Below are positions 1,501-49,632 of a stretch of DNA of 64,000 nt, piece by piece. The stretch lies in the IMG/VR virus record IMGVR_UViG_3300032770_000002, positions 166,254 to 230,253 of that record, one strand, 5' to 3'. How positions within the stretch are numbered: the first letter of the stretch is position 1; each line of letters starts with the position of its first letter. A program made the translations under genes and the position numbers. The notes under the pieces are model-generated. The model was not told the DNA's origin, did no database searches, and saw only the letters and a program-made list of their open reading frames with translations.

Positions 1501-1722
1501 ATGAAAAACGAACAGTTAGCTAACCAGATCTGTGACCAACTTTTGGCCCGTGAAGAAGTTAAAGAATGCGGCCCTGGAATGCGCGGCAGCCGCTCCGCCG
1601 AAGGGTCCGGAAGCCGAGCTGGGTTTGCTTCTCGGGCTTCGCGTGGATCCGCATCAGCTTCCCGTGAAGCGTCCGCGTCGCGTGAAGCATCGGCCTCGCG
1701 TGAAGCGGCTGGGTCGCGCTAG
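1501..1722 (+). CDS. small low-complexity protein with ASREAS repeats, putative internal head protein
   Basis: 73-aa ORF; N-terminus LANQICDQLLAREE; repeat-rich tail. Confidence 0.55.
   Translation: MKNEQLANQICDQLLAREEVKECGPGMRGSRSAEGSGSRAGFASRASRGSASASREASASREASASREAAGSR
1657..1710 (+). repeat. three imperfect 18-nt coding tandem repeats (ASREAS)
   Basis: gcttcccgtgaagcgtcc / gcgtcgcgtgaagcatcg / gcctcgcgtgaagcggct. Confidence 0.8.
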
Positions 1723-1994
1723 AAGGCCTTGATTTCGATGACCGGAAGTTGTGAACCGTCCGCCATTACCGGACGGTTTCGTTTTGTCTCCTGAAGGTCA
1801 TCTTCGGTTATTGCCGAGTTCCAGCACTCGGAACACAAGAATCCATCGTAGCCGTAGATGGAGTGGAAGTCGGATGATTTAATGAGGAGGGTTTGGCAGT
1901 TGACGCACACCCCACACGTCACCATGTCACGGTGCCACCCGATTATTGAGTAGCCCGCGTTGTCAACCCCAAAGTCGTCTGATTTTGCGGACAT
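1719..1994 (-). CDS. small Cys-rich (Zn-ribbon-like) hypothetical protein
   Basis: CVNC...CSEC pairs; stop overlaps the convergent gene. Confidence 0.45.
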   Translation of the reverse strand: MSAKSDDFGVDNAGYSIIGWHRDMVTCGVCVNCQTLLIKSSDFHSIYGYDGFLCSECWNSAITEDDLQETKRNRPVMADGSQLPVIEIKAF

Positions 1995-2037
1995 TGGTTT
2001 CTTCTCGCGATTTAAGAACAGCAGTGTTCTCAGGTTC

Positions 2038-2643
2038 GTGCGTTATTTACCTGGACATCAATTTGAAAGTGGTTTGATTTTAGTAAGGAGATCTCGAACC
2101 GTTCATCGAGGAATTTTCAAGTGTGTTTGCGGTGATGAATTTGAAACATTTATAGCCAATGTCGCTAGGGGTATTACTCGATCATGTGGATGTCTTAAGT
2201 CAATACTTCGTCGACAAACACTGGGTCCAATCGATTACGAGTCTGCTCGTGATAAAATTCTCTTTTCTACGATCAAATTTCATGCCAAAGATCGAGGTCT
2301 TGAGTTTGAGTTAACTCTCGATGATGTCCGAAGATTAACGCGTCAAAACTGCCATTTCTGTGGGAGTCCTCCGGCCAGTCGTCATTTTATTGGAGGTCGA
2401 AATAGACTTGCGTCATTTTACATCATTCATAATGGGATTGACCGATTGGATAATCTAAAAGGTTACACTGTCAAAAACTCGGTGCCCTGCTGTAAACAGT
2501 GCAACTATTCAAAACGCGACAACAGTGTCGACGAATTTAACGCCTGGATTGATCGCGTTGTGGCCCATCGTAACGCGGTTAAAGATCAAAGTGAGATGGC
2601 TTCAACAGTGATTCTCAGACGAAATTGTCAGTTGACGTGTTAA
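2038..2643 (+). CDS. HNH homing-endonuclease-like protein
   Basis: CVCG...SCGC N-terminal motif; CHFCG...GIDRLDNLKGYTVKNSVPCCKQCNYSK HNH motif; lower GC than flanks; start placed at GTG 2038 (ORF track starts at 1960). Confidence 0.8.
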   Translation: MRYLPGHQFESGLILVRRSRTVHRGIFKCVCGDEFETFIANVARGITRSCGCLKSILRRQTLGPIDYESARDKILFSTIKFHAKDRGLEFELTLDDVRRLTRQNCHFCGSPPASRHFIGGRNRLASFYIIHNGIDRLDNLKGYTVKNSVPCCKQCNYSKRDNSVDEFNAWIDRVVAHRNAVKDQSEMASTVILRRNCQLTC

Positions 2644-3679
2644 GAATTTCGTGAATGAGAAGATTTTTTTCATTGTTCGCACATTGGTGGCAGCAGTCTC
2701 TGACCGGGTCTAAGCCGTCAAACCTTGCCTTGGCCTCGTCGCTGAACCACAGCTCGCTAAACTTTCGGTCCTTGATTGACCCGATTGCGCCAGTCTCATC
2801 ATAGGCCTTGTTGTGGCAAGCATAGACGTTTAAGTCCGCGCCAACGACCGGGACAATCTGCATGAAATAGCACCGGTGATAGGTTCGAAAGCTGTTGTGG
2901 GCCGATGACATCAAGTCATAGGTCGTGTTGACCGAGAACGTCTTGTCAACGATCTTGTCGCGAATCTGGTCGAGTTGAACCTGCACCCGTGCAGCGATCT
3001 TGCGGTGATACTCGTGGAAGCCGGGTGAAAGCCACATCGGGCTGAAGCGCACGTTCTGAACGCCGCAGTCCTTAAGCTGCTGTGAGAATTGGAATAGCTT
3101 GGAGCAGTTGTCGGCGTGGACGATGAAGTTGACGTAGAGGTCGCAGGTCTTTGACTTTCTTTTTGCAAAGGCCGCAATGTTGACCATGATCTCGTCGAAC
3201 ATCGACTCATGGACGTGGCGGAACTTTGCCAGCTCCTCCTTGCACGAGTAGTCCATTGACACGCGAACCCACTTGGCGTTGGCGAGAGTCTCTGCCCGCT
3301 CGTCACTCAGAAAGGACCCGTTGGTGATGATGGAGAGGTCGATGTTCCGCTCAAGCGTGTATCGCATCATCGGCACGATGTCTGGGTGGATGAGCGGCTC
3401 ACCGCCACCAGAGAACGTCAAGGCCTTGACCCCAATGTCGGAAAAGTCGTCGAGAAGCTCAATCATCTTCTCGAGCTTGATGCGGTCACGCACGGCCATC
3501 TCCTTGTGCATCTGGGACATCTCTGGCGCGTGATAGACACACCACCAACAGTGATGGTTGCAGAGATTGATTGGCTTGACCCGGACGTAAATAGGCGCAC
3601 TGATGGTGCCTTTTCTGAACGACTTGAGCTTGTCCGGGAAGTGAACTATCTTCAGGTCTGAATACTTGTTGCTCGGCAC
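2615..3679 (-). CDS. radical SAM protein with SPASM/twitch-like C-terminal domain
   Basis: CNHHCWWC (CxxxCxxC), SGGGEPL, ITNG, WVRVSMD; C-terminal CYF...VYACH...CCHQC. Confidence 0.9.
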   Translation of the reverse strand: MPSNKYSDLKIVHFPDKLKSFRKGTISAPIYVRVKPINLCNHHCWWCVYHAPEMSQMHKEMAVRDRIKLEKMIELLDDFSDIGVKALTFSGGGEPLIHPDIVPMMRYTLERNIDLSIITNGSFLSDERAETLANAKWVRVSMDYSCKEELAKFRHVHESMFDEIMVNIAAFAKRKSKTCDLYVNFIVHADNCSKLFQFSQQLKDCGVQNVRFSPMWLSPGFHEYHRKIAARVQVQLDQIRDKIVDKTFSVNTTYDLMSSAHNSFRTYHRCYFMQIVPVVGADLNVYACHNKAYDETGAIGSIKDRKFSELWFSDEAKARFDGLDPVRDCCHQCANNEKNLLIHEILNTSTDNFV

Positions 3680-3686
3680 GGTTAAA

Positions 3687-4160
3687 CTACGCTGGCACTT
3701 TCTTCAGGCTGATGAACCACGGTCGTTCATAGTCAATTGACTTCATGGCTCGAATGAGGCCGTCGACTGACGCCGGAAATTTGGCCTGGATGTTTCGGAA
3801 CATTCCAGTCATTGACAGTGCGTCAAGTTCGTTGTGGCTTGGGCCGTAGGTTGGGTAGTCCGCGTAGCCAACTAAGCCGACCGGCAGTTTTTGGAAGTCA
3901 ATGTCAAGCTTGACTTGCTCAAAGGCCCGCTCAAGCAGGAATGGCGTGATCGTGTAGACGATCGGACGCAGACCGGCGATGGCCATCCCGGCGGCAAATC
4001 CAACCATGCTCTGCTCGGCAATTCCAAACTCAATGTGCCTCCGCGGGCAGAGCGCGCGAAACGTGTCGAACATCGCTCCGCCGACGTCGCCAGTGATGAG
4101 GTGGACACGCCCGTCTTGCAGGCCTAACGCGGCAATGGATTCGGCAAACTGTTTTCTCAT
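3687..4160 (-). CDS. transketolase, pyrimidine-binding (C-terminal-type) subunit
   Basis: LITGDVG, FGIAEQSMVGFAAGMAIAGLRP, FLLERAFEQVKLD, GPSH. Confidence 0.88.
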   Translation of the reverse strand: MRKQFAESIAALGLQDGRVHLITGDVGGAMFDTFRALCPRRHIEFGIAEQSMVGFAAGMAIAGLRPIVYTITPFLLERAFEQVKLDIDFQKLPVGLVGYADYPTYGPSHNELDALSMTGMFRNIQAKFPASVDGLIRAMKSIDYERPWFISLKKVPA

Positions 4161-4792
4161 AGTTCGGACATGATCGATTGAAATTCAGGGTCGGTTAGGA
4201 AGTGAACGTGCCAGTCAGGGTGGGCTTCGAAAAGCTTGACACCGAAGCCCTTCTGGCGTCCGTATGTCTTGATTGGGAACACTTGGTTCATGAGCTTAGT
4301 GATTGACGGATCGAGACACCGGCACGAGCCCTGCCACCCGTTGTCGTCGACGTGAACGGTGAGATTATCGAGGTTGTATCGGCGGGCGACGTTCAAACTT
4401 TCCCACGTCGTTCCCTCAAGGCACTCGCCATCGCCAAGCAGGACGTGGACGTGGCCAGGGGCGTGGATAAACTTCTTGGCGTAGGCGATCCCGACGGCCG
4501 TTGGAAGGCCGTGTCCAAGGCTGCCTGTTGTTGACGGAATGCCATTGGCCGGGTCAATGTCAGGGTGGACCTTCATGACGTTAGGGTGAAAGCCGTGGCT
4601 CTCCAAGACCGCAAACCACGCGACACACGCGTGACCCTTGCTAAGGATGAAGACGTCATTCTTGTGGTCGAATTGCTTGTAGATGTCCACGATGACCGGA
4701 AGTGCGCTCAGGCTGCTGGCGATGTGGCCGTGTGAGTTGATGTCACGGTGGGACCTGGCTATTTCAATGACGCGGCGAATGAGTTCTTTCAT
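4157..4792 (-). CDS. transketolase, N-terminal TPP-binding subunit
   Basis: GHIASSLS, FILSKGHA, TTGSLGHGL, GDGECLEGTTWE...DDN TPP motif. Confidence 0.9.
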   Translation of the reverse strand: MKELIRRVIEIARSHRDINSHGHIASSLSALPVIVDIYKQFDHKNDVFILSKGHACVAWFAVLESHGFHPNVMKVHPDIDPANGIPSTTGSLGHGLPTAVGIAYAKKFIHAPGHVHVLLGDGECLEGTTWESLNVARRYNLDNLTVHVDDNGWQGSCRCLDPSITKLMNQVFPIKTYGRQKGFGVKLFEAHPDWHVHFLTDPEFQSIMSEL

Positions 4793-4794
4793 AC

Positions 4795-8525: not shown

Positions 8526-9025
8526 GCGAACAACTTCAACGATCGGAACGCTTGACCCTCGACGAGATTGACGACCTTGAGAAGGGTCTCGAAGGGCTCA
8601 AGACGTGGATGGACACCCTTGGATTTGGCGTCATCGCTGAGACCCCGCGCACCATCACATTCAGTCCGCGCATGCGGTCGGCTTTGGCTCGCAGCGGAAA
8701 CCTGATCATGGACATGTCCATCATGGAGACGAGGTTCATCCAGCAGTGCGGCGCCACGACGGTCAAGGCGAAGGACCACGTCCAGGAGGAATTTTGCCTG
8801 CTTGTCACGTTGAACAACGAGCGTGAGACGATGGTCCAACTGTATGGCGTGATGAACGGCCAGGAGGTCTTCAACAACTTCAAGGGCTTCGTCCACGACG
8901 TCGTCACGAACCGGCTGGCCATGCCACAGCCGATCAAAGAAGAGCTGTCCAGGACGTTTCTGGAAGGCCTGCAGGTGCTCAAGAAAGACCCTGTGAAGCT
9001 TCTTCAATTTGGCGTTACGCCATGA
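8522..9025 (+). CDS. hypothetical protein
   Basis: 167-aa ORF with ATGA coupling at both ends. Confidence 0.65.
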   Translation: MSEQLQRSERLTLDEIDDLEKGLEGLKTWMDTLGFGVIAETPRTITFSPRMRSALARSGNLIMDMSIMETRFIQQCGATTVKAKDHVQEEFCLLVTLNNERETMVQLYGVMNGQEVFNNFKGFVHDVVTNRLAMPQPIKEELSRTFLEGLQVLKKDPVKLLQFGVTP

Positions 9026-9648
9026 AATGGACGCATTGCAAATATGACGGTGCAAGGCTGAGGAAAGATGCGGACAATACTGTCCAACGAAAAACTGTCA
9101 GTGGCACCATGGTCTTCCGACGTCAGAAGATGATGGGCCTCCACGTCATCGAAAATTCCATCGTGTTCCTATGGGTGATGTCAACCGCTCGACGAGTCAT
9201 TGACCAAGTTGCTGAGTCTGACGACCTCAGTCAGGCCATTCGTCAGCGTGAACACTTGATCCTGTGCATGCGCGACCCAGCATTTGTCGCGCGGAGTGAA
9301 AATCCTCGGAAAGCCATTACTGGAGACATTCTCAAGATCACACGGAGAATGAAGCACCCGCCTGGTTCAACAGTCCACATCATGCAATTGACCAGGGACG
9401 CCGAGGACATTGATCGGCCGTGGGACCGCGGCACGCGAACGGTTCGTGCAACTCAGTTTCAAGGAATTCCACCGCAGGACAGTAAGACGTGGGGTCGTCC
9501 AACTTATGGTCATTCCGTTGATTATTGGAACTATGAACCACACGAGTGGGGCACCCAGGAAGTCGAACTGGTCGGGCACGGAAAACGTCATGAGCTGGGA
9601 CGGCTATGGACGCCACGGCCTGGAAATCCTGGCTACGATTTGGGCTAG
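9022..9648 (+). CDS. hypothetical protein
   Basis: 208-aa ORF with ATGA coupling. Confidence 0.6.
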   Translation: MKWTHCKYDGARLRKDADNTVQRKTVSGTMVFRRQKMMGLHVIENSIVFLWVMSTARRVIDQVAESDDLSQAIRQREHLILCMRDPAFVARSENPRKAITGDILKITRRMKHPPGSTVHIMQLTRDAEDIDRPWDRGTRTVRATQFQGIPPQDSKTWGRPTYGHSVDYWNYEPHEWGTQEVELVGHGKRHELGRLWTPRPGNPGYDLG

Positions 9649-9655
9649 TTAGCAT

Positions 9656-10075
9656 ATGCCGAGTTTAGCTCGAGTCGTCATCAACATTTTCGAGGCATGT
9701 TACTGCCAAGCCTCTGGCGAGGAGGTCGTCAACTACCTGCTTGACATTGGCACGTCACATGGCGGATTTTTGCCAAAAACCTTGCGTGACATCGCCGGCC
9801 GTGACTTTGAGTTGACGTCAGTTCCCATTGACGACCTGCTCAGGTCCGATGACAAGTTCGCTGAATTTTATCGCAAGACCAAGCGGCCAGACCCAAACAA
9901 ACCTTACCAGCCGCGTGATTTAAGGCAGACCGACAAGGGTGAGCCGGTGGAGGCTGAGGACTTGATTGACTCGCCAGTCGTTGTCATTGATGGGAAGCTC
10001 CGTGACGGGTGGCACAGAACGGCCGGAAAATTGGACAGGGGTGACAAGAAGGTCTTGGCATACGTAGCAAAATGA
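9656..10075 (+). CDS. ParB/Srx-like domain protein
   Basis: VPIDDL...PVVVIDGKLRDGWHR...VLAYV (DGxHR motif). Confidence 0.55.
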   Translation: MPSLARVVINIFEACYCQASGEEVVNYLLDIGTSHGGFLPKTLRDIAGRDFELTSVPIDDLLRSDDKFAEFYRKTKRPDPNKPYQPRDLRQTDKGEPVEAEDLIDSPVVVIDGKLRDGWHRTAGKLDRGDKKVLAYVAK

Positions 10076-10668
10076 AAGCACGCGACATCATCGATTCGGT
10101 CACACCAGAGCGGGCGTGTGTTCAGTGCGAAATTGAACACGGCATTTACGACAAGTCAGACCCTAACAAGTCACATGGCTCGTGCCGGCGTCACCTTGAA
10201 CAGTGGGCAAGGGAACAAGGATTGACTGACGCCCAAGTTGATGAGATCATGCGTGAGACCAAGTCTTACCCACCGGACTTGGGGCCAGTTCGTGAAGCCT
10301 TAGAAAGGGCTTGTTCGCAGTGCGAAAAGGACCACGGGATTCGAAGCCACGGTAAAAGCCACGGGCTCTGCAAGCGGCATACCATTGAGTGGGCCAGGGA
10401 AGGCGGAGTCTCCGAACCTGAGATTGAGGCCATCGTTCGTGAAGTTGACGCTGGTAGTGGCTTTCCAGAGGACCTTGGGCCAGTCAAGAAGGATGAGGAC
10501 CTTGAAAAACAGTGCCTCTACTGTGGGCGGCTATTTGACCCGCAGTCAAACCAGTGGGTCGACGCAAAACCTAGGGACCCGAATAACGTCAGTCACGGCT
10601 ACTGCCCTGATTGTTTGGAGAAGTCCAAGCAACAGGTTCGGTCTATGTTTGGAACGGAGCGCCGTTGA
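10072..10668 (+). CDS. protein with three CxxC...SHGxCxx(H/C) zinc-binding repeats
   Basis: ACVQCE..SHGSCRRH; ACSQCE..SHGLCKRH; QCLYCG..SHGYCPDC. Confidence 0.7.
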   Translation: MKARDIIDSVTPERACVQCEIEHGIYDKSDPNKSHGSCRRHLEQWAREQGLTDAQVDEIMRETKSYPPDLGPVREALERACSQCEKDHGIRSHGKSHGLCKRHTIEWAREGGVSEPEIEAIVREVDAGSGFPEDLGPVKKDEDLEKQCLYCGRLFDPQSNQWVDAKPRDPNNVSHGYCPDCLEKSKQQVRSMFGTERR

Positions 10669-11171
10669 ACGCCCGCAATCTTATCGACCGGTTGGTTGAA
10701 ACGTCTGACTTGACGTTTGTCCCGATGGACGCTGACGAGATCCGGCAGGTTCAGTCTATTGCCGCTGGACAGCTGGCCAACGTGGACAATCTTTACTTCA
10801 TTAACCAGGACATTACTGATTATCACAGCCTTAACATCGACATCCCGCAGGAGTATTTGCGCAAGAAGGTTGGACACGGCCTTGAATCGGGTGACGTTCA
10901 CGGCGAGTTTTACGGATTCGGTCGAATGGCCTTCACACCTTCATCTCTTTTACGGTCTGAAATTGGAAGAGTTCCAGTTGTCTCTGGCTTGCACGTCATG
11001 GTGTTAAAGAGCAGCCAAGGGTGGGTTATTGGAACCACTCGCGGAGGGTCATACGGTGGCATAACTTTTTACAAGGACCACCCGATGCATGACCTCAACG
11101 CGGCCATCCAGAAGTTCATTGCCACGCTGGAAGTCATTGCAAATGGACAAAATTCCCGGTTTGACAGCTGA
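10665..11171 (+). CDS. hypothetical protein (N-terminus NARNLIDRLVE)
   Basis: TTG 10665 overlaps the upstream TGA; N-terminal motif shared with other putative head proteins. Confidence 0.6.
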   Translation: MNARNLIDRLVETSDLTFVPMDADEIRQVQSIAAGQLANVDNLYFINQDITDYHSLNIDIPQEYLRKKVGHGLESGDVHGEFYGFGRMAFTPSSLLRSEIGRVPVVSGLHVMVLKSSQGWVIGTTRGGSYGGITFYKDHPMHDLNAAIQKFIATLEVIANGQNSRFDS

Positions 11172-14769: not shown

Positions 14770-15631
14770 TGGTTCCAGCAACGGGGATTCCAGCCCTGTT
14801 GTCAATGACCGGGTTCTCGTCGATGTCACGCAAGTCTACGGTCGACGTCATCAACTGCTCCAACGTGTCAGGCGCGACGACCGCGTTCAAGTTCGTGGTC
14901 ACTTGCCACAAGGCCGGCAGGACGAGGTCTTGCATGTCGACCTGGTAGCCTTCAACCCGGACTGAGAACGTCGTCTGGTATCGAATCTGCTGGCTTCCAC
15001 GGTCATCCTCAGTGGCGTCGGACACGTCGGACTCAAGGCACAGCCTGATCAGCATCACATTTTCCTCAGTCGGATACTTCGCCCTGATCCACGTCTGGGG
15101 TTGCGCCCCGTTTCGCCAGAAGCATGCCCAGACGCGCTGCATGAATAGGGCCTGAGTGTCGGGACGCAGGCACCAATACGTGACGTCCAGGTGAAAGTTC
15201 AAGCCAATCGGCCTGTTTCTGACGCGGACGTTCCCGAGGTCCTGTTTTACGACGTCATTGGAAACGGTGGGCCAGCTGATGTGGCGGGCCCGGTGGGTTG
15301 AAAATGTCCCATAGTTTCGATACGATTGGCGCCGCCGCGTGATGGAGATGAGCGGGTATCGCGCTGGCGATGGATACGGCTCGTAGAGCGGGGAGCCATT
15401 TTTGTTCTTGGCCTTGAGCAGGTAAAGGTAAGGATTGTCAGGATTGGACCACTGCTGCTTAAAGTCCGCAAAGGCGTCCATCGGCTTTGCGAAGACGACC
15501 GGGACTGGATACCCGTCAGCAACAAAGAAGTGCGTGTGGCACCACCACTGCAGAGCCAGCTCGTGGATCCGCATTGGGGTCAAGTTAAAGTCAGGCGTGA
15601 CTCCAGGGCCGGTTATGATTGGCGCGTCCAT
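14750..15631 (-). CDS. tail completion / sheath terminator protein (T4 gp15-like)
   Basis: VPVVFA..., YPLISITR, PIGLNFHLDVTYW, IRYQTTFSVRVEGY resemble gp15-family proteins. Confidence 0.55.
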   Translation of the reverse strand: MDAPIITGPGVTPDFNLTPMRIHELALQWWCHTHFFVADGYPVPVVFAKPMDAFADFKQQWSNPDNPYLYLLKAKNKNGSPLYEPYPSPARYPLISITRRRQSYRNYGTFSTHRARHISWPTVSNDVVKQDLGNVRVRNRPIGLNFHLDVTYWCLRPDTQALFMQRVWACFWRNGAQPQTWIRAKYPTEENVMLIRLCLESDVSDATEDDRGSQQIRYQTTFSVRVEGYQVDMQDLVLPALWQVTTNLNAVVAPDTLEQLMTSTVDLRDIDENPVIDNRAGIPVAGTITWTPP

Positions 15632-15651
15632 CGTTTGCTACTTAAACTACC

Positions 15652-16002
15652 ATGACAGAATTGTTGACAGGCCGATCACGGCGAGGTTCAGAACCTTGGC
15701 TAGGTGTCGACCTTGACGCTACTTTGGCCACCCACAAAGAGGGCTCTGGCATTGATTCCATCGGTGAGCCAGTGCCTGGCATGCTTGAGAAGGTTAAGCG
15801 CGCATTGCGGGCCGGACGCAAGGTGAAGGTCTTCACCGCGCGAGCGGGTGACCCTAGGCAAATTCCGCTCATTCAGCAGTGGACAGTCAAACATGGGCTT
15901 GGAAAGCTCGAAGTGACCAACGAAAAAGACGAGAACTGTGAAGAGATTTGGGACGACCGTGCCAAGAGCGTGGTTCCTAACAAAGGACGCTTTGCCAACT
16001 AG
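15652..16002 (+). CDS. HAD-superfamily phosphatase-like protein
   Basis: GVDLDATLA (DxDxT), VFTAR, K...WDDRA. Confidence 0.7.
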   Translation: MTELLTGRSRRGSEPWLGVDLDATLATHKEGSGIDSIGEPVPGMLEKVKRALRAGRKVKVFTARAGDPRQIPLIQQWTVKHGLGKLEVTNEKDENCEEIWDDRAKSVVPNKGRFAN

Positions 16003-16006
16003 ATTT

Positions 16007-17143
16007 ATGAGTGAAGAGAACCAACAGGTGCCGGAATTTGACGTTCTAACTCCAGACATTCCACTGCCGCAAGTCGTGGCGAGGCAGGAAATTGCGGATG
16101 AACGGAAGGGAGCGTTTCGATTCAGCTTTATCGGGTCTGGCCAGGGTGGCGGGAGAATTGCGGCGACATTCCGCGCCCTGGGCTACAAGCGCGTTTGCGC
16201 GATCAACACGGCGCGTCAGGACCTGGCGTCGCTCCCAGCCGACGTTAAGAAACTCGTTATCGGCGATGGAGAAGGAGGTGCTGGCAAAGACCCAGCCGTG
16301 GCGAAGGCAGCGTTTGATAAAAACGCTGAAAATGTCCTAGACCTGATGCGGGCGTCATTTGGCCAAGTGTATGACCGAACAATCATCTGTGTTGGGGCCG
16401 GCGGTGGAACTGGCGCTGGAACGGTGATCGGCCTTGTCGACAAAGCGCGTGAGCTTCAGGTTGCCAGCAAGTGTCCGACTGACAAGGTCGGCGTCATCGT
16501 TGCCCTGCCCAAGGTGACCGAAGGCCGGCGTCCAAGCATCAACGCTCACACCGTCTTGTTATCATTGGTCGCCTACGTTGAACAGGGCTTTGTCTCACCG
16601 CTTATCGTTCTTGACAACGAGCGAATGAGCTCACTCTATCCTGGGCTCGCGATCGATCCATTCTGGGACACGGCCAATCAAAGCGTCTGTCGGCTGTTTG
16701 ACCTCTTCAACATGATCTGCGTTCAAAATTCGACATACACCGCGTTCGACCCGGCTGATTACAAGTCGATCCTCGACTCAGGCCTGATCGTCTTTGGGGC
16801 CACGCCCGTCGCCAACTGGTCGGAGGCCGGCCAAATCAGCTCCGCACTGCGAGACAACTTGAAGAAAAACATTCTTGCAGGAGGTGTCAACCTGTCAACT
16901 GGAACGGTCGCCGCGGCAATCGTTATTGCTGGAAAGAGCGTCTTAAGCCAAGTGCCGCACGAGCACCTCGACCAGGCCTTCGATCAATTGACAAGGTTGT
17001 TGAAAACAAACAGCATGGTGCACCGTGGCATCTACAGCGGAAACAAGGACTCCATGGCCATTTACACCGCAATTGGCGGCCTGGCCGCACCGACTGAGAA
17101 GCTGGACGAGCTGGCCAAAATCGGCGGGATAAGCGGTAAATAA
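16007..17143 (+). CDS. tubulin/FtsZ-family GTPase (PhuZ/TubZ/CetZ-like)
   Basis: IGSGQGGGRIA, AINTA, GAGKDP, GAGGGTGAG signature, LDNE, FDPADY (T7 loop); start ATG 16007. Confidence 0.9.
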   Translation: MSEENQQVPEFDVLTPDIPLPQVVARQEIADERKGAFRFSFIGSGQGGGRIAATFRALGYKRVCAINTARQDLASLPADVKKLVIGDGEGGAGKDPAVAKAAFDKNAENVLDLMRASFGQVYDRTIICVGAGGGTGAGTVIGLVDKARELQVASKCPTDKVGVIVALPKVTEGRRPSINAHTVLLSLVAYVEQGFVSPLIVLDNERMSSLYPGLAIDPFWDTANQSVCRLFDLFNMICVQNSTYTAFDPADYKSILDSGLIVFGATPVANWSEAGQISSALRDNLKKNILAGGVNLSTGTVAAAIVIAGKSVLSQVPHEHLDQAFDQLTRLLKTNSMVHRGIYSGNKDSMAIYTAIGGLAAPTEKLDELAKIGGISGK

Positions 17144-17206
17144 TTTGTTAACAACTTAAAGTTGCAAGTTCTATCTGATGTCGTCGTAAACGTCGTAGGA
17201 CGTTTT

Positions 17207-17237
17207 GGCGGGCCGGTTTTGGCGGCCCGCCTTCTTC
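17207..17237 (+). terminator. intrinsic terminator between convergent genes
   Basis: 9-bp stem GGCGGGCCG / CGGCCCGCC followed by ttctt. Confidence 0.7.
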
Positions 17238-17239
17238 AT

Positions 17240-17440
17240 TTAGAGGCCAAGTTCGTCAGGCGTTCCCTCGATTAGCCCATCAGACCTGGTCGAGGCTTTT
17301 GGCTCCAAATTTTCAACGTCTCCATGCGTTTTCGTGTGGTCTTCGTAGCATGCAGCACAGACGTTGTCGTCACAGTGCTCACACCGGCCAATCGTCATTC
17401 TCCCGCACTCACAGCAGGGTTGTTCAAGAGCGTCTGCCAT
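17240..17440 (-). CDS. small zinc-finger protein
   Basis: CCECG..CEHC..CAAC..H. Confidence 0.55.
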   Translation of the reverse strand: MADALEQPCCECGRMTIGRCEHCDDNVCAACYEDHTKTHGDVENLEPKASTRSDGLIEGTPDELGL

Positions 17441-23281: not shown

Positions 23282-24531
23282 TGAACTTGACGACATCAGT
23301 TGGGTTTGAACTCGAGTTTAGCGGGTCAAATCTTGACCGTGTTGAACGCGAGCTTCGCTCTAAGGGGATCGACTGTCACAATTACGGCCGGTGGCGCCAC
23401 TCTGACGGCGACCTGTGGGACCTTAAGACCGACTCGTCATGTGGGTTTGAAGCCGTCAGCCCGATATTGCAGACCTATGAGGAGCTGGTTGATGCTGCTG
23501 GTGTCGGCGCCTTGATCGCCAATGTCGGTGGAACTGCGACAGAGAGGTGCGGGCTTCACGTTCACATCGGCGGCGGTGACTTCAGTTCGCTTCAACTTGA
23601 AAACGTCTTTCGATTTTTCACACGGTATGAGTTCGCCTTTTTTCTCATGGTGCCTCCGGCTAGGCGGACAAACATCTACTGCAAGCGGCTTTCACCAGCT
23701 ACGATCAACTCAATCAAGCGGGCGTCATTTCAGCGCAATGACTGGTGGATTCACACGTGGACTGACAAGAATGTCTGGCTGAATGGGCGCCGTTGGCCGG
23801 ACATCAGGACGCTTGAGTTTCGCATCATGCCCGGGTCACTCAGCCCATACTTCATCATTGGCTACGTGACGTTTCTTCAGTGCGTGATCAACACGGTCAA
23901 GGACCGAACGATTAACTGGGGCATGGCTCGCAGCAAGGATGACCGCTCGCTCTTCCAGACGATGCTTGGTCAGTCCGGATTTTATGGCCCATGGATTAGT
24001 GAAGACCTTAAGGAACTCTACCTCACCGGGCGCAAGTGGGCGATCGAGCGGTATAAGCTGGCGAACGAGTTAGTGTCGGGTTTCTTTGAAATGACGCGGG
24101 TCGTTCCTAAAATCCCGTCGGTCGACTGCCGGCCAAGTTGGGACCGTGGAGACACATCGCTCCCACAACGGACACGCCGTGTGAGGCGACGAGTGCCGGA
24201 AGTAGAGGTGCGAAGCCCCGCGTCATCTCCGCCTCCGCCATCGACGGCTTATTCACCGATTCAGCAGCCTCAGTTTATAAGCTCAACGCCTGTGGTGACG
24301 TCATTTGCTACTCAGACGACGCAGACGATGCCAGAAATTTCAATCAGCAACGCTACCACTACTTCCGGCGATTGGATTGTCTCATGGGGACAAGGAGGAA
24401 CGAGCCACTTGAACATGGGCCAAGCTTCTAGCTCAGCGGAAACAACTCCAACCGCAGAACGCAGTGAAACGACAGCAACTCCGCCGACGCCGTCGTCCGA
24501 ATCTACACCGTCTGAATCTCAGGGCTCGTAG
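23281..24531 (+). CDS. putative amidoligase 2
   Basis: VGFELEF, TDSSCGFEAVSP, CGLHVHIG, NIYC, TLEFR; long S/T/P-rich tail. Confidence 0.82.
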   Translation: MNLTTSVGFELEFSGSNLDRVERELRSKGIDCHNYGRWRHSDGDLWDLKTDSSCGFEAVSPILQTYEELVDAAGVGALIANVGGTATERCGLHVHIGGGDFSSLQLENVFRFFTRYEFAFFLMVPPARRTNIYCKRLSPATINSIKRASFQRNDWWIHTWTDKNVWLNGRRWPDIRTLEFRIMPGSLSPYFIIGYVTFLQCVINTVKDRTINWGMARSKDDRSLFQTMLGQSGFYGPWISEDLKELYLTGRKWAIERYKLANELVSGFFEMTRVVPKIPSVDCRPSWDRGDTSLPQRTRRVRRRVPEVEVRSPASSPPPPSTAYSPIQQPQFISSTPVVTSFATQTTQTMPEISISNATTTSGDWIVSWGQGGTSHLNMGQASSSAETTPTAERSETTATPPTPSSESTPSESQGS

Positions 24532-24541
24532 TTAGCCCAAG

Positions 24542-25702
24542 ATGAGACAGGCAAAAGCTACTATCGACCAGCTGTTTGAGCGCCAGATTGATGAGATCTG
24601 GCGCCCTCCAAATCTTCCCGATAAGGAGCCTGAAGACATCTTTCAAGACACCATGGACCGCGCTTACGCGGGCTATGAGCAAAAGGCTGGTCGACAGCAG
24701 GTTAATCGGGCATTCGACAACCGTGAAAAGCAGTCCGGTCATCGTAATTTTCTAGACGCTTTGGCGGAACCCGAACAACTTGCAGTCGTCTTCGGGAACC
24801 TCAACTATCAAGTTGAAAATGGCGGATTCACACAGTGGATCGACAACAATTATTACGAAGACACGATCGACAGGCTGCGTGAATTTGGTGACCGATTCAA
24901 GGAACGATTTCCAGTTTTAGGCCGGGTGTTAGCGATCATCGATGAGTTGGAGGAGTATGCCTCGAATTTTGGCGAGGACATGACCCTGCCCAAGTTGACC
25001 GGCCGCGAGTGGGATGAGGACATCGGCAACGCCTTTTACGATGAGGATTGGGACAGGCTCAACGAGCTTACGGGCGGAACTGACATCGACAAGCGCAGGG
25101 TTGACGACGCCACGGAGGATGTGCTCAAGGACATGATCGAACTTTCGGTCGATGAGTCAGAGACCGAAGGCCAGTTTTACTGGGCGATTAAGCGGTCACG
25201 CCTGCATGGCCACGATGAGGAGATTGAGCGTTCGAGCATGACATATGCTGACGAGGACCAGGCTTACGAAGCGGGTGAAAAGAGAGCTGAGGAACTCCAA
25301 AAAGAAGCCATGGAGGAGCAGAATGAGCTCTACGACTTAGCCCGTGAGGAAGCAAAGAATGAACTGGAAAAGGAGCTGCGTGAGGGTCTTGACAAAGACG
25401 TTCATCGGACTTTTGAACGAGCCGACCACGACTATTACGCGATTCACACCGAGGTTCTTGACGCAATTTCTAGCATCCTTCGCACGGAATATAACGTCAA
25501 TTCGTCATTCAGTCAATTTTTCACTCAGGCCATGGGCAAGGTCCGTCAGTCACTTAAACGCGTGGCCGATGTAGCTCGACAAAAACTCTCGTCCGGACTT
25601 GGACGGGCAGCTGGAGCATTGACTCGAGCTTCACAGAAAGTTCGTCCGGGAGAATCTGCGGAAGAATCTGCGAAAGACTCGATCTGTCGACTCATCTCAT
25701 AG
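24542..25702 (+). CDS. acidic protein with DMP19/DUF4375-like motif
   Basis: LNYQVENGGFTQWIDNNY...ADHDYY; D/E-rich middle. Confidence 0.6.
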   Translation: MRQAKATIDQLFERQIDEIWRPPNLPDKEPEDIFQDTMDRAYAGYEQKAGRQQVNRAFDNREKQSGHRNFLDALAEPEQLAVVFGNLNYQVENGGFTQWIDNNYYEDTIDRLREFGDRFKERFPVLGRVLAIIDELEEYASNFGEDMTLPKLTGREWDEDIGNAFYDEDWDRLNELTGGTDIDKRRVDDATEDVLKDMIELSVDESETEGQFYWAIKRSRLHGHDEEIERSSMTYADEDQAYEAGEKRAEELQKEAMEEQNELYDLAREEAKNELEKELREGLDKDVHRTFERADHDYYAIHTEVLDAISSILRTEYNVNSSFSQFFTQAMGKVRQSLKRVADVARQKLSSGLGRAAGALTRASQKVRPGESAEESAKDSICRLIS

Positions 25703-29986: not shown

Positions 29987-30235
29987 CTAGTCTTCAGTTT
30001 TTGCGTGGCCAATGTCAGGGAATTTCCGATGAACAGCCGCGCGCACTTTGGCTTTTTCAGCCGGAGTGCCGTGCTGCGAAACTCGTGCCAGGGCATTTCT
30101 GGCGTGGGCTTTGTCATGAATTGGATAGCGGCGTTCTTTTGGAAAGACAAAGTCACCGCCGGGCAAATTCTTGCGAGCTTGGGTCGTTAGTTTACGCTCA
30201 TCAATCAGAGCGTCAATCAGGTGTCTTGCGTTCAC
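29987..30235 (-). CDS. small basic protein (DUF6582-like), putative head protein
   Basis: RKNLPGGDFVFPKERRYPIHDKAHARNALAR. Confidence 0.7.
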   Translation of the reverse strand: MNARHLIDALIDERKLTTQARKNLPGGDFVFPKERRYPIHDKAHARNALARVSQHGTPAEKAKVRAAVHRKFPDIGHAKTED

Positions 30236-30250
30236 GGGCTTAAGTATAGC

Positions 30251-30598
30251 ATGAGCGACGAACCACTGCCAGCTGGGCGCCTTTTATCGGATGACCAGAT
30301 CAAAACTGCGATTGGTGCTGGACAATTTTATTTTGAGGTGCTTCAGTATTATGACCGTGACTTTAGCCTGGTTTCCATCAGCACGGAGGCCGACCTCGAC
30401 AGGGCTATTTCACTGGCCACGCAGTTTTCAAGCGCTCCACAGACGTTGTTCAAGCCGCATGTTTGGCTGATGGTTCCGGTCGTGTGGAGCGAGTCTCAAG
30501 CCCAGCCGACGTCGCTCGTTGACATGCAGCGAATCAAGGAACTGTTTGTCGGGATGGGCGACTCAGACAAGTATGCGCCCGATGTCGGTGAGCTTTAG
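30251..30598 (+). CDS. hypothetical protein
   Basis: ORF from ATG 30251. Confidence 0.55.
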   Translation: MSDEPLPAGRLLSDDQIKTAIGAGQFYFEVLQYYDRDFSLVSISTEADLDRAISLATQFSSAPQTLFKPHVWLMVPVVWSESQAQPTSLVDMQRIKELFVGMGDSDKYAPDVGEL

Positions 30599-31542
30599 CC
30601 CAGTCGAGCCACGCCATTCGTGCTGTTGTCAACGATGACCGACGACTTGAGGCGCTGGAGAACCTCGCGGACTGGTTCCTTCAACGCGTAAGCGCCGACG
30701 ATCAGTTCGCGCAGGTGTCCAAATGACATGCCATTGGTCTGCTCGGCGAGCCACTGAATCTGCTCTGGTTTTTCAACGGCTTCGAGCTTCTTGGTCAAGT
30801 AGACCTTGCGGGCTTCGAGGGCTGGCGGCCCAAGGTGAATGACCTTGTCAAACCGGCCAGGTCGGCGCAGCCGCGGTGGGATTCGGTCAAGGTAGTTCGT
30901 GCTGCCAAGGTAAAGGATGTTTTGAATCTGGGCGTCGCCGTCGAGGAGCTGGAGCATGGACCGCTCTGAATAGCCGACAATTTCATCAAGGTCTTCGAAG
31001 ACGACCACGACCTTGCGCTCTGGCTCGACCTCACGGTAATTCTTCAGGCCCTCACGCAGCGTGCCAACTTCCGTCGTGAAGAAGATGATGTCGCCGCGGT
31101 TGACCATCATCTCACTGACCTGTTGAAACATCGATGACTTGCCGCACCCGGGCGGGCCCTCCACGAGGATGCCTCGGTTGTGGAGAAAACCAAGCTGATT
31201 GAAGTTTTCCTTCAGGCCCCAGAATCGGTCGATCTCGTCAAGGACCTTTCGCATCGGGCTGGACTCGAACAGGTAAAGCTCGTCGGTCTTTGGCGCAAAC
31301 TTGGTGTAGACCGGGCCTTCCATCGAGCTTTCAATGCGATACGCGAATGCTTGAAGTGCCGGGCGCAGGGTCACGTCACCGATTGGCTTGAGTGAGTTGC
31401 CGCTTTGAAGAAATTGAATGTAGTGCTTCTTAAGTTCTTCTTCGTTTTTAGACTTAAGCCCCTCCATGATGGCGCCACTTTGACGGGCGATGTCACGGGC
31501 TTCGACCACATTCCCGAGAATTTTTGAGATGCTGTTGATCAC
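30595..31542 (-). CDS. AAA+ ATPase
   Basis: GPPGCGKS Walker A, FEDLD Walker B, STN, RRPGRFD. Confidence 0.9.
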   Translation of the reverse strand: MINSISKILGNVVEARDIARQSGAIMEGLKSKNEEELKKHYIQFLQSGNSLKPIGDVTLRPALQAFAYRIESSMEGPVYTKFAPKTDELYLFESSPMRKVLDEIDRFWGLKENFNQLGFLHNRGILVEGPPGCGKSSMFQQVSEMMVNRGDIIFFTTEVGTLREGLKNYREVEPERKVVVVFEDLDEIVGYSERSMLQLLDGDAQIQNILYLGSTNYLDRIPPRLRRPGRFDKVIHLGPPALEARKVYLTKKLEAVEKPEQIQWLAEQTNGMSFGHLRELIVGAYALKEPVREVLQRLKSSVIVDNSTNGVARLG

Positions 31543-36612: not shown

Positions 36613-37179
36613 ATGCCAGACGAAAAGGAAAGTAAGCCAAAGCCGGCGGCAAAGCGACCGCCCGTTCTCGACGTTCATCGCCACATTCGTGAACTTGACG
36701 TCGTGTGGTATCACCACAGCTGCTGGGCGTGCGTTCGCTTGACCGACTGTTCAGCCAAGCTGGTCGAAGTGGGCCCAAACTGGGCCGAGGCGACTGGCAT
36801 TCGAACTGACGGAAACGGGATACGCGTCAGTCCTGGGATTCTGGTGGGCTCTGAGGACGGGGTGACAAGCCGTGACTCGACCACGATGTGGCTCATCGGC
36901 CGCCTTACGCCGGGTCAGATTATTCGTGAGGAGACGCCGATCTCGCCAAGTCGAGGACGAACGATCATTGGGACAGTTGACGTGCCAATGCCTGGATTTG
37001 CCCCAAGCGCCAAGCGAAAGCGCGCCCCGGTTGAAGTTGAATCGGCCAGTGATGACTCGCCTATACCGGCTCCCCTGGACCCAATTTTGATGGCGCTACA
37101 ATCTGCCGCCGAACAATTTGCCCGCGTCTTGGGACCGGTTGCGGCACCCGCTGGCGAATCATCTGCTGCCACCGAGTAA
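36613..37179 (+). CDS. hypothetical protein
   Basis: ORF from ATG 36613. Confidence 0.55.
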   Translation: MPDEKESKPKPAAKRPPVLDVHRHIRELDVVWYHHSCWACVRLTDCSAKLVEVGPNWAEATGIRTDGNGIRVSPGILVGSEDGVTSRDSTTMWLIGRLTPGQIIREETPISPSRGRTIIGTVDVPMPGFAPSAKRKRAPVEVESASDDSPIPAPLDPILMALQSAAEQFARVLGPVAAPAGESSAATE

Positions 37180-37423
37180 GCGGATACTCGCGCAAGAGGC
37201 GGCCCAGTTCCTGGATTACCTTAAAAGCGTCCCCGTTGCGCCCAGTCTCTTCCATCCACAAGGCCACGGCATTCCTCAGCCCTTCGCTGCCAAGAGTCTT
37301 CCAGAGTGAATGCAGGTTGTCCTGCCAGTCATATTGGCCGACCTCGTCCTGGATGAACTCGGCCGCCAGGTCCTCTGGGTCTTCAACTTCAAAGGCAGAC
37401 TCAATCAGTTTCTTTGCCAGCAC
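37061..37423 (-). CDS. hypothetical protein (N-terminus LAKKLIESAFE)
   Basis: TAGTTA 4 nt upstream; convergent overlap with the neighbour. Confidence 0.5.
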   Translation of the reverse strand: MLAKKLIESAFEVEDPEDLAAEFIQDEVGQYDWQDNLHSLWKTLGSEGLRNAVALWMEETGRNGDAFKVIQELGRLLREYPLTRWQQMIRQRVPQPVPRRGQIVRRQIVAPSKLGPGEPV

Positions 37424-37474
37424 GCCGTAACTAATGCGAGTTTACACACGAGCCGAAGTTCTGTATCTTGTCAT

Positions 37475-47738: not shown

Positions 47739-47748
47739 GGAAATTTTG

Positions 47749-47777
47749 TTTACAAGTTTATGGTTCTTTGGTATGGA
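47749..47777 (+). promoter_or_regulatory. degenerate class 1 promoter
   Basis: ttttgTTTACAag present; -10 is poor (TATGGA). Confidence 0.4.
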
Positions 47778-47840
47778 TAGACTGCGGATGCCGCCACCAG
47801 GCTCTGTGTGACATGTTAGTTAAGCGTGATGGCGTAAAAC

Positions 47841-48566
47841 ATGAAGACCGTCAATCAACTTGTTGAATTTCTCTTTCATAGCTCGAAAGAACTGGCCTCG
47901 CTTGGTGATGACCAGCCGTTCTTTGAGGAGCTGAGCGCCGCTGTGCCTGTCAAGGTGTTGGACAAGCAACCGCTGGTTTCTGCCTTAAAGAAGGCTGGCA
48001 TTGAGGGCCTTGGCAACAACCTCAAGTCTGACGCGTCGGGCTTGTTCGCGGAGTTTGACAATACCGCTGATTATCAAGCATTTGTCGGCCAGCTTGTCGA
48101 TGGCGGAAAGCTTTATGACCTCGCTTCGTATGGGTGGGTCGCCACATACTGCGACGACACTTCGGCCCTGGGTGACACGCCCAAGTTTCGAGTCAATTTC
48201 CTTGACATCGGCGAGGTCGAGCCAGGTGACACCAAAGGACATGAGTCTGAAGACGCCGACATCATGGCCATGGACCGCGAGGCCGTCGCGGCCTATAAGG
48301 AAGTCAATGACCTCACAGGACGCAAGGACCAGTTGAAGAAAAAGGAAGAGACGGCGACCTACACTGAGAGTCGAAAGATTGTCGACAACCTGTCGAACGC
48401 CGCCCAAGTAGTGGACGAAATGCTGCGTCGTTCAGAGTCCAAGAAAGACAACACGGACAACACTGTTACCTGCCCAAAATGCCACACCGGGCACGTTAAA
48501 CAGAAGACCGTCAGCGGACAGAGCGAGTTTGAGTGCCAGGACTGTGGCCACACTTTTAAAAGATGA
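47841..48566 (+). CDS. hypothetical protein with C-terminal Zn ribbon
   Basis: CPKC...CQDC. Confidence 0.65.
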   Translation: MKTVNQLVEFLFHSSKELASLGDDQPFFEELSAAVPVKVLDKQPLVSALKKAGIEGLGNNLKSDASGLFAEFDNTADYQAFVGQLVDGGKLYDLASYGWVATYCDDTSALGDTPKFRVNFLDIGEVEPGDTKGHESEDADIMAMDREAVAAYKEVNDLTGRKDQLKKKEETATYTESRKIVDNLSNAAQVVDEMLRRSESKKDNTDNTVTCPKCHTGHVKQKTVSGQSEFECQDCGHTFKR

Positions 48567-49096
48567 GCGAGTTTGGCTTTGACCAAGAGTGGGCGTCGCA
48601 GGCCTTGCGTAATACTCAACGGGCCTTGGTCGAATTTTATGACGGTGAGGACCTGACGGACTGGCAGGAGCGCAAGATTCGCATTCAGCTTTACAACTTG
48701 GCCCGCTCCTACAAGGAGAAAAATGCTGACTACGCCAAGACCCTTGAGAAGTTCATTGAGATTTGGGAGAATCCCGCGAACAAGCTGGACGGCAACACGA
48801 ACATTGAGGCCGTCAACGCTTTAATTGGGGCCGCGAGTTTGGAAGCGGCGCGCGAGTGGCCGCTGCAGAATTTCTTCATGAACCTCGAGGCGTCACTTCG
48901 TCGAATCACCTCGTCTGAAAACAAGCTCCCTCGAATGCCAGTCGGCGGCAATGAACCGCCCAAGGGCATGACCGGCAAAAAACCACTTGGCGCTCAACTC
49001 CCGTCCATGTTTGGCCCAGAGAAGGAGATGCCGACCGGAGCACAACCTGAATTTCCAAAACCTGGAGAAGCTGAAAAACCAGAGCCTGCACTATGA
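48563..49096 (+). CDS. hypothetical protein
   Basis: ATGA-coupled ORF with Pro-rich tail. Confidence 0.65.
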   Translation: MSEFGFDQEWASQALRNTQRALVEFYDGEDLTDWQERKIRIQLYNLARSYKEKNADYAKTLEKFIEIWENPANKLDGNTNIEAVNALIGAASLEAAREWPLQNFFMNLEASLRRITSSENKLPRMPVGGNEPPKGMTGKKPLGAQLPSMFGPEKEMPTGAQPEFPKPGEAEKPEPAL

Positions 49097-49632
49097 GAAA
49101 GCAAATCGCGACAAAGTTACTCGAGCATCGGGTCGTCAATTTTTCATCGTTTATACCCGCTGGCTTGCTTGAGCCGGACGAGCTCGCGGAGGCGATTCGC
49201 TTGCGGTGGGTTGAGGGAACGCCCGAGACGGATGGGCGCCTTCACGTGACGCACCAGCTTGGCAAGATTGAGGAGATGGAAAATTCACGTGACGAACTTG
49301 GCCAAGGTGACACCGTCACAGTTGGTGAGGACGGCGAGAGCTACACCGGCACCGTTCACTCGATTGACAAGGACGGCGTGCGCGTCTCATTTGGCACTGG
49401 AACGGACACGGCGGGAAATGTCAAGAAGACGCCGAAGAAAGCTCAAGGCGGAGTGGCTTTATATCGGCCTGAAGAGCTTCAACGTGTAGCCCAGCCAAAG
49501 TTTGTGGCGCCTCCAGGCCAGCAGGCGACTGACCGCCAGCACCAGATGTTCGGCTACGCCAGGCAGATGATGGGCGGCGCGGCACCTACGTCCGGAAGCG
49601 GTGGACCTGGCGCTTTTGGACTGTCTCGCTGA
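49093..49632 (+). CDS. hypothetical protein
   Basis: ATGA-coupled; SH3-like GDTVTV..GTVHSI..VRVSF. Confidence 0.6.
   Translation: MRKQIATKLLEHRVVNFSSFIPAGLLEPDELAEAIRLRWVEGTPETDGRLHVTHQLGKIEEMENSRDELGQGDTVTVGEDGESYTGTVHSIDKDGVRVSFGTGTDTAGNVKKTPKKAQGGVALYRPEELQRVAQPKFVAPPGQQATDRQHQMFGYARQMMGGAAPTSGSGGPGAFGLSR

Follow-up and report, generated by a model that had tools for sequence, protein, structure and literature searches.

An N-terminal tag shared by unrelated proteins of an uncultivated jumbo phage, most likely of the T4 capsid-targeting kind

Tagged open reading frames in the window

The window analysed here is a stretch of 64,000 nucleotides, positions 166,254 to 230,253 of the 230,253-bp IMG/VR record IMGVR_UViG_3300032770_000002, a phage known only from a wetland metagenome. 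Within it, otherwise unrelated proteins begin with the same short helix, for which the conserved core is M-(K/N)-A-R-x-(L/V)-I-D, often followed by L-x-E. Four carriers lie in tandem on the plus strand. The first, at 9178..9648 (156 aa from 9178), has the tag MSTARRVIDQVAE at 9178-9216, although its start is ambiguous, because an upstream ATG at 9022 would make the motif internal. The second, at 9656..10075 (139 aa), has a weaker tag, MPSLARVVINIFE, at 9656-9694, with TAGTTA at 9646-9651, 4 nt before the ATG; neither of these two proteins has a Pfam family. The third, at 10072..10668 (198 aa), is Cys-rich, with only a sub-threshold hit to the SBP zinc finger; its tag MKARDIIDSVTPE is located at 10072-10110 and its ATG overlaps the stop of the previous gene. 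The fourth, at 10665..11171 (168 aa), starts with (TTG)NARNLIDRLVE at 10665-10700, with a TTGA overlap with the stop of the previous gene, and is a paralogue of the ORF at genome position 106946.

The carrier at 24542..25702 (+) is 386 aa long and contains a DMP19-like domain at residues 72-175. Its tag MRQAKATIDQLFE is at 24542-24580, with TAGTTA at 24529-24534, and orthologues elsewhere keep a tag-like N-terminus. On the minus strand, the carrier at 29987..30235 (82 aa) has a DUF6582 domain preceded by the tag (GTG)NARHLIDALIDE at 30197-30235, with TACTTA at 30241-30246, and the carrier at 37061..37423 (120 aa) has the tag (GTG)LAKKLIESAFE at 37388-37423, with TAGTTA at 37428-37433. The latter has homologues in all three related phages examined (G001, G002 and G003, with capsid proteins 66-70% identical); the G001 copy shows a tag-like N-terminus (AQSLVEVLLE), while those of G002 and G003 do not. 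The ORF at 49093..49632 (+; 179 aa, ATGA overlap with the previous gene) starts with MRKQIATKLLE at 49093-49125, which fits the version of the tag seen in the related phages rather than the core of this genome.

Three further ORFs are weak candidates only. The one at 30595..31542 (-; 315 aa) has a possible tag of the relatives' type, (GTG)INSISKILGNVVE, at 31501-31542. The ORF at 1501..1722 (+; 73 aa), with a low-complexity SASREA tail, has the loose match MKNEQLANQICDQLLARE. The ORF at 47841..48566 (+; 241 aa), with a C-terminal zinc ribbon and TAGTTA at 47817-47822, has a loose N-terminal MKTVNQLVE and an internal NAAQVVDEML at residues 186-195.

An earlier note, made from the sequence of the window alone, had proposed a shared leader A-x-x-(L/I)-(I/V)-D/E-x-(L)-x-E on a set of packaged and injected cargo proteins. 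All nine N-termini it cited (30235(-), 10665, 10072, 24542, 37423(-), 9656, 1501, 47841 and 49093) translate as written, but the phenomenon is larger than it described: it missed 9178 and about 28 carriers outside the window. Its statement that most carriers follow a TANWTA element holds for the window set, in which TAGTTA or TACTTA lies 4-18 nt upstream of 9656, 24542, 37423(-), 30235(-) and 47841, but not genome-wide, where only about 9 of 37 carriers have it directly upstream. Of the cargo functions it listed, DMP19-like and DUF6582-like were confirmed by Pfam and zinc ribbons only weakly, while ParB-like was not reproduced.

Frequency, conservation and modularity of the tag

We searched all six-frame ORFs of at least 60 codons in the whole genome with the regular expression A[RK].[LIVMT][IV][DEN].[LIVMAF].{1,2}E, which gave 11 hits; ten lie 2-4 codons after ATG, GTG or TTG and the eleventh lies 8 codons after a Met. 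The shorter core [AS][RK].h[IV][DE] gave 44 hits, 30 of them 1-4 codons after a start and 20 exactly 2 codons after one, against 5.8% expected (binomial p = 8e-14). An unbiased scan of all three-residue N-terminal patterns ranked M.A+.hh- first (p about 1e-16 over about 9e4 tests). In total, the core Met-x-[A/S]-[R/K]-x-h-[I/V]-[D/E] occurs on about 37 ORFs, roughly 12% of genes. The trailing h-x-E, which the earlier note had included in its motif, is present in only 20 of 35 tags (57%), the other 15 having none within 8 residues of the core; this is still enriched over the 15-17% of controls (p about 1e-7). Where present, its Glu falls at residue 9 or at residues 12-15.

Conservation is at the protein level. 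The DNA pattern DTGNNNGCNMRNNNNNTNRTNGAN matches 24 times in the genome and 0 times when read backwards, but information content is high at codon positions 1 and 2 and close to zero at wobble positions and upstream. All four Ala codons and both Arg codon families (CGN and AGR), plus Lys codons, are used, and the related phages keep the amino-acid pattern with different codons. Most genes have no Shine-Dalgarno box and many appear to be leaderless, so the first codons could matter for initiation; nevertheless, many carriers start with GTG or TTG inside operons, and the possibility that the peptide is a by-product of a translation signal, a promoter-proximal element or a repeated DNA cassette is largely refuted.

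Most carriers show no similarity to each other beyond the tag and have no Pfam or PHROG family. BLAST of the carriers against each other beyond residue 14 revealed only a few small paralogue groups: genome ORFs 108972 and 110577, and the group 12935/154606/146979/141230, share a C-terminal block, and 106946 pairs with the window ORF at 10665. These groups, and the frequent tandem arrangement of carriers, would fit remnants of one or a few rapidly diverging paralogue families in which only the first helix has stayed recognizable, for structural reasons such as dimerization and without a sorting function. We consider this doubtful, as carrier lengths range from 62 to 503 aa (up to 1190 aa in the related phages) and the tag sits on members of independent Pfam families (DUF6582, DMP19, Amidoligase_2 and HAD-like), with 63 of 120 DUF6582 homologues and the HAD-like orthologues in G003 and in this genome starting without it. 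AF2 models place the tag as a low-confidence helix, at residues 3-13 in one carrier and 2-19 in another, detached from the fold; in the carrier at 24542 the helix 2-19 (pLDDT about 54) is followed by disordered residues 21-30 and a confident domain from residue 33.

The tag is also modular, having been added to and lost from orthologues exactly at the h-x-E boundary, so that its end aligns with the N-terminus of untagged homologues. The DUF6582 copy has a 13-aa tag ending in L-I-D-E followed by RKLTTQ, whereas 63 of 120 homologues start MAKLT. In the HAD-like protein, the G002 orthologue has MRAKQLVDILLE before DKKVIAVDLDG, while that of G003 starts MDKRWIGVDLDG and the orthologue in this genome also lacks the tag.

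G001, G002 and G003 each have 12-17 ORFs starting M-x-A-x-x-h-V-x-x-L-L-E. These ORFs (64-1190 aa), which share M..A..hV..LLE, are unrelated beyond residue 28, and their start-proximal enrichment has p = 2e-5 to 6e-7. In the tags picked out in these phages the last three residues read L-L-E or a close variant. A core gene of the related phages (genome 152449, 40 homologues) keeps [IL]-L-E at one aligned position behind a variable helix; this gene, which carries the ancestral form of the tag, has no identifiable fold or virion annotation. The carriers themselves are fast-evolving accessory genes, with 3 of 32 conserved in relatives, against 81 of 237 size-matched other genes (p = 0.004). Six of the 18 TAGTTA copies that lie just before a start codon precede carriers; others of the 18 precede the tail sheath, a minor tail protein and a virion structural protein.

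A proposed capsid-targeting role

The genome encodes a 606-aa protein in which a T4 gp21-family prohead protease (Pfam Peptidase_S77, E = 3.8e-16) is fused to a scaffold-like tail, and a gp23-family capsid protein (Gp23, E = 1.1e-23). L16-x-E18, near the protease N-terminus, and L500-x-E502, in the scaffold tail, are invariant in 15 protease-scaffold orthologues, and the capsid protein has conserved [LM]-L-E and L-D-E at residues 70-72 and 81-83; that these sites are actually used is inferred. Taken with the properties of the tag, this makes a portable prohead-core (capsid) targeting propeptide the best-supported interpretation, to which we assign a probability of about 0.5, but the evidence is indirect and includes no proteomic, structural, expression or cleavage data, the closest cultured phage having a capsid protein only 30% identical. 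In the mechanism we propose, a 9-15 residue amphipathic helix, reading M-x-A-x-x-h-h-x-x-L-L-E in the related phages and reshaped in this genome to M-(K/N)-A-R-x-(L/V)-I-D-(x-h-x-E), would dock a protein onto an assembling core built from the protease-scaffold fusion. The gp23-type shell would close around the core, the gp21-family protease would cut after the Glu of h-x-E, freeing the cargo inside the head, and the cargo would be ejected with the DNA. The roughly 37 carriers would then be a large, fast-evolving set of internal or ejected proteins, and tags without h-x-E would be targeted but not cut.

Some observations fit this mechanism less well. Many carriers lie in long runs of small genes headed by host-type early promoters, a small HAD-like enzyme, tagged in relatives, is an odd capsid cargo, and 37 cargo species is many times the number known for T4. 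About 10 G002 tags stay conserved for some 12 residues past L-L-E, into VGPDEVxPKDYL, which a pure propeptide does not require. Together with the roughly 40% of tags in this genome that lack h-x-E, the early promoters, the HAD-like carrier and the conservation in G002 leave it possible, though less likely, that the acidic amphipathic helix is a docking epitope for a different common partner, such as a phage hub protein, a host target or another intracellular assembly, and that L-L-E is not a cleavage site. However, no candidate receptor was found, the most conserved part of the tag in the relatives is exactly the T4-type cleavage triplet, also conserved in the capsid protein and the protease, and the tag boundary coincides with the natural N-terminus of untagged homologues. 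An exposed, detached helix on many accessory proteins that look early might instead be a degradation or turnover signal, read by a host or phage protease other than the prohead protease and timing the lifetime of these proteins, given that N-terminal recognition motifs probably exist for AAA+ proteases. This seems unlikely, as conserved acidic residues and an L-x-E ending do not appear to be features of N-degrons, and it does not explain why the same triplet is conserved in the capsid protein and the prohead protease.

Comparison with known packaging signals

[quoted passage not shown] T4 CTSs are N-terminal propeptides of 10-19 residues on divergent internal proteins, cut by gp21 after L/I-X-E, with separable targeting and processing residues and a cargo set that varies between related phages (PMC9026906). 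The tag described here has no sequence similarity to the T4 CTS, is found on 12-37 proteins per genome instead of a handful, and has a consensus that has drifted between relatives (A-R-x-h-I-D here, h-V-x-x-L-L-E elsewhere); in addition, the protease is fused to a scaffold-like tail. The Dar antirestriction proteins of phage P1 are accessory anti-defence proteins that are loaded into a capsid and ejected with the DNA (PMC9024508), but P1 has a different head lineage and apparently no short leader shared across many proteins.

The giant phages phiKZ, 201phi2-1 and SPN3US have many internal head proteins and paralogue families, and a gp21-related protease that cuts after Glu. Conserved N-termini on diverged paralogues, such as SPN3US gp53 and gp54, have been read as CTS-like (PMC5694885), and many packaged proteins are not cleaved, 42 head proteins in the case of SPN3US (PMC10052503). 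Those propeptides are mostly longer than 100 residues, have the cleavage motif S/A/G-X-E and are not one short tag shared by dozens of unrelated proteins. The phage analysed here is not related to phiKZ: its polymerase is family A and its head genes are T4-type.

Frequency and position of the N-terminal motif

The 64-kb window forms the end of a single contig of 230,253 bp with direct terminal repeats, which is rated 100% complete, has a GC content of 54% and was obtained from a wetland metagenome. The contig is the genome of a jumbo phage, encoding ribonucleotide reductase, a family-A DNA polymerase, DnaB-like and other helicases, an NAD-dependent ligase, a tail sheath and a T4-type portal. 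No close relative is present among GenBank phages, the polymerase being at most 25% and the capsid protein at most 30% identical. However, IMG/VR contains a set of related contigs with capsid proteins that are 58-87% identical, several of them 200-240 kb long, and three of these (here named G001, G002 and G003) were retrieved in full.

The N-termini listed in the earlier note, which proposed a shared leader on unrelated proteins as a candidate capsid-targeting or cleavage signal, are all present as written, as is the internal NAAQVVDEML. When the motif of the note was expressed as a regular expression and run over every six-frame ORF of at least 60 codons in the whole genome, 11 hits were obtained; ten lie 2-4 codons after ATG, GTG or TTG, and the eleventh lies 8 codons after a Met. 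A position-weight scan and a direct N-terminal regular expression then showed that the real core is shorter and much more common: Met-x-[A/S]-[R/K]-x-h-[I/V]-[D/E], typically M-K/N-A-R-x-L/V-I-D. It occurs on about 37 ORFs spread over the genome, often in tandem runs. Of 44 core hits, 30 lie 1-4 codons after a start and 20 lie exactly 2 codons after one, against 5.8% expected (p = 8e-14). An unbiased scan of all three-residue N-terminal patterns also puts this motif first, and a degenerate DNA pattern for it matches 24 times, against 0 for the reversed control; chance can therefore be rejected. The trailing h-x-E, which was stressed in the note, follows the core in 20 of 35 tags, still enriched over the 15-17% in controls (p about 1e-7), with the Glu at residue 9 (the I-D-E form) or at residues 12-15.

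In the window, the clear carriers start at 10072, 10665, 24542, 30235(-) and 37423(-). The tag at 9656 is weaker, the one at 9178 has an ambiguous start, and those at 1501 and 47841 are loose matches. The ORF at 1501-1722 is short and its C-terminal half is a low-complexity Ser/Ala/Arg/Glu repeat (SASREA units); it is uncertain whether it codes for protein. The ORFs at 49093 and 31542(-) fit the form of the tag found in the related phages. Elsewhere in the genome, a 27-codon ORF with a full tag (MSLLSESSARRLIDSQLEM...) at 141227-141310(-) (L010:6227-6310; L numbers are our labels for individual sequence stretches) stops directly upstream of another tagged gene (141230-) and looks like a remnant or a frameshifted duplication. 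At genome position 150050 (L010:15050), a Met plus tag (MSNARKVIDEF..) lies in frame near the C-terminal end of a larger ORF. This arrangement is conserved in three phages, with MLNARQTIDEF.. and MSKARQLIDEY.. also found (L073:8584 and L075:3716), and may be a nested internal start that produces a small tagged protein.

The signal is at the protein level. Information content is high at codon positions 1 and 2 of the conserved residues, and close to zero at wobble positions and in the 30 nt upstream. All synonymous codon families are used, and many carriers start with GTG or TTG overlapping the stop of the preceding gene. A repeated DNA cassette, a promoter element or a start-region signal therefore does not explain the motif, and we regard a nucleotide-level origin as very improbable.

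The carriers are mostly unrelated to each other. With the first 14 residues removed, BLAST of all carriers against each other finds only a few paralogue groups, and the possibility that the carriers are remnants of paralogue families appears unlikely. Pfam gives families for only four: a DMP19-like domain (window 24542), DUF6582 (window 30235-), Amidoligase_2 (genome 88453) and weak zinc ribbons. The DMP19-like label rests on Pfam alone (29 bits against a cut-off of 25), as Foldseek on the whole model found no match. The ParB-like cargo suggested in the note has no Pfam support. The remaining carriers have no Pfam family, and the two tested against PHROGs have none there either. Carriers are accessory genes: only 3 of 32 have a homologue in G001-G003, against 81 of 237 size-matched other genes (p = 0.004).

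The tag in related phages and its modular placement

The pattern specific to this genome is nearly absent from G001-G003, and the three-residue pattern scan did not reveal any tag there; clustering of N-termini by BLOSUM score, however, uncovered a sister tag in each of them. G002 has at least 17 ORFs starting M-[K/N/R]-A-x-x-[L/I]-V-x-x-L-L-E, G003 has about 15 and G001 about 12. These ORFs are 64-1190 aa long and unrelated beyond residue 28, and the large tagged proteins among them have no Pfam family. Start-proximal enrichment of the pattern h-h-x-x-h-h-E has p = 2e-5 to 6e-7. Closer relatives, on contigs L073 and L075, have the A-[R/K]-x-L-I-[D/E] form.

One gene conserved across these phages (genome 152449, 423 aa, 40 homologues at 41-62% identity) always begins with such a helix and keeps [I/L]-L-E at one aligned column, directly before a conserved [A/M]-x-[I/L]-D-x-G. 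This protein has no Pfam or PHROG family. A profile search against the PDB gave nothing, Foldseek gave nothing against the PDB and only one uncharacterised phage protein against BFVD, and a protein atlas gave no usable hit. The DMP19-like protein also keeps a tag-like N-terminus in its orthologues. The tag is thus ancestral to this group of phages, and its most constant part outside this genome is L-L-E.

G002 also carries a second, unrelated shared N-terminus, M-[I/L]-P-E-x-G-[T/S]-x-x-[D/E]-F-K-[R/H]-x-[V/L]-L, on 16 small ORFs (72-193 aa), many of them rich in CxxC. These are located mostly at 192-198 kb on the minus strand (L061:12771-18133), and also at G002 positions 52078, 157381-159088, 168446 and 173369. 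They show no BLAST similarity beyond residue 20, and their wobble positions vary.

The tag behaves as a modular addition. Of 120 DUF6582 homologues, 63 begin MAKLT... directly, while in the copy of this genome a 13-residue tag ending in L-I-D-E is placed in front of RKLTTQ. A small HAD-like protein reads MRAKQLVDILLE-DKKVIAVDLDG in G002, starts MDKRWIGVDLDG in G003 and has no tag in this genome. In both cases, the residue after the Glu aligns with the natural N-terminus of untagged homologues. About a dozen DUF6582 proteins from other metagenomic contigs (among homologues P0057-P0165) share a different 18-residue N-terminal extension (M.NFW.GFEKRA.ELT..), and the same domain may carry other lineage-specific leaders elsewhere. 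AF2 models of two carriers show the tag as a low-confidence helix (residues 3-13 and 2-19), followed by a disordered linker and then a confident domain.

Head machinery and the possible role of the tag

Genome ORF 15568-17385 (606 aa) has a Peptidase_S77 (T4 gp21) domain at residues 43-184 and a long helical tail. The next gene is a Gp23-family capsid protein, with no separate scaffold gene between them. Across 15 orthologues of the protease-scaffold, L16-x-E18 near the N-terminus and L500-x-E502 in the otherwise poorly conserved tail are invariant. The capsid protein has conserved [L/M]-L-E at residues 70-72 and L-D-E at residues 81-83, about 35-50 residues before the conserved VQPM block; gp23 of T4 is probably cut in the corresponding region. 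The capsid protein peptide NARRKFGRLDE (residues 73-83, L001:17638-17670) lies between the two conserved L-x-E sites and resembles the tag (compare NARNLIDRLVE); relatives that lack the A-R-x-h-I-D tags have NCRSRFGRLDE at this position. A second capsid protein stretch, NDVIDQLV, also echoes the tag core.

It has been reported that gp21 cuts after L/I-X-E, that T4 capsid targeting sequences (CTS) are N-terminal propeptides of 10-19 residues on divergent internal proteins, that targeting and processing residues are separable in those sequences, that gp21 itself has an N-terminal LIE, and that the set of tagged proteins varies among T-even phages (PMC9026906; PMC5694885). In SPN3US, many packaged head proteins are not cleaved (PMC10052503). 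The best-supported explanation for the tag is a T4-CTS-like prohead-core targeting propeptide, removed at h-x-E by the S77 protease, which would mark a large and rapidly changing set of internal or ejected proteins. We put the probability of this reading at about 0.5. Points against it are that there is no virion or cleavage evidence, 40% of the tags in this genome lack h-x-E, the number of carriers is high, an enzyme-like HAD protein is tagged in relatives, and in G002 conservation runs on after L-L-E. A docking tag for another partner is a possible but less likely alternative, while a turnover signal appears improbable.

The principle is known from T4, but in the literature we searched, no description was found of a short tag shared by 12-37 unrelated ORFs per genome, conserved across a group of uncultivated jumbo phages and drifting in consensus between them. 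If the tag is a capsid address, a sequence rule alone would list the proteins a jumbo phage injects ahead of its genome, a class that in T4 includes anti-restriction and host-takeover factors. Here, the list would comprise about 37 unknown proteins in one genome, one of them with a DMP19-like DNA-mimic domain, and dozens more in relatives, giving a focused set of candidates for anti-defence functions. It would also extend the T4 CTS principle to a distant group of uncultivated phages at a much larger scale than in T4, show how such a code drifts alongside a fast-evolving scaffold, and supply a short tag for loading foreign proteins into large capsids. A more speculative and rather unlikely possibility is that the tag is a general, evolvable protein-sorting code shared by these related, uncultivated jumbo phages with T4-type heads and genomes of 200-250 kb, which drifts between relatives, is copied onto new genes and is lost from orthologues. 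If so, the complete packaged and ejected proteome (12-37 proteins per genome) could be read from the sequence alone. In a more radical variant, the destination would not be the capsid but an unknown phage-built assembly, which would make it a new sorting system rather than a relative of the T4 CTS.

Elements preceding start codons

Two kinds of start-proximal element stand out. The hexamer TAGTTA has 23 copies in the genome and is 25-fold enriched upstream of starts, 18 of the copies lying 2-18 nt before a start codon. In the window, it is found at 9646-9651, 24529-24534, 37428-37433(-), 47817-47822 and 51632-51637(-). The hexamer precedes the tail sheath, a minor tail protein, a virion structural protein and a 1789-aa ORF, and also six carriers, and in several cases its TAG is also the stop codon of the preceding gene. 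It may be a late-gene element. Its positions suggest that some carriers are expressed together with virion genes; no RNA run contains the region. Other carriers lie in long operons headed by the second element, a host-type promoter, so that timing remains open.

This promoter, GTTTACAA-N13-TGnTATAnT, ends only 6-8 nt before the ATG and precedes replication genes. It is found at window 60573-60608, before the ligase gene, and also before window starts 23093, 27080, 31718, 57534 and 58683, with at least 12 sites genome-wide. The strong promoter architecture so close to the start implies leaderless mRNAs; most genes have no Shine-Dalgarno box, but the capsid protein gene has AAGGA. Three tandem copies of GTTTACAA/TTGTAAAC lie directly before the T4-type portal gene, at genome 61363-61396 (L005:1363-1396), and single copies without a -10 box are scattered between genes.
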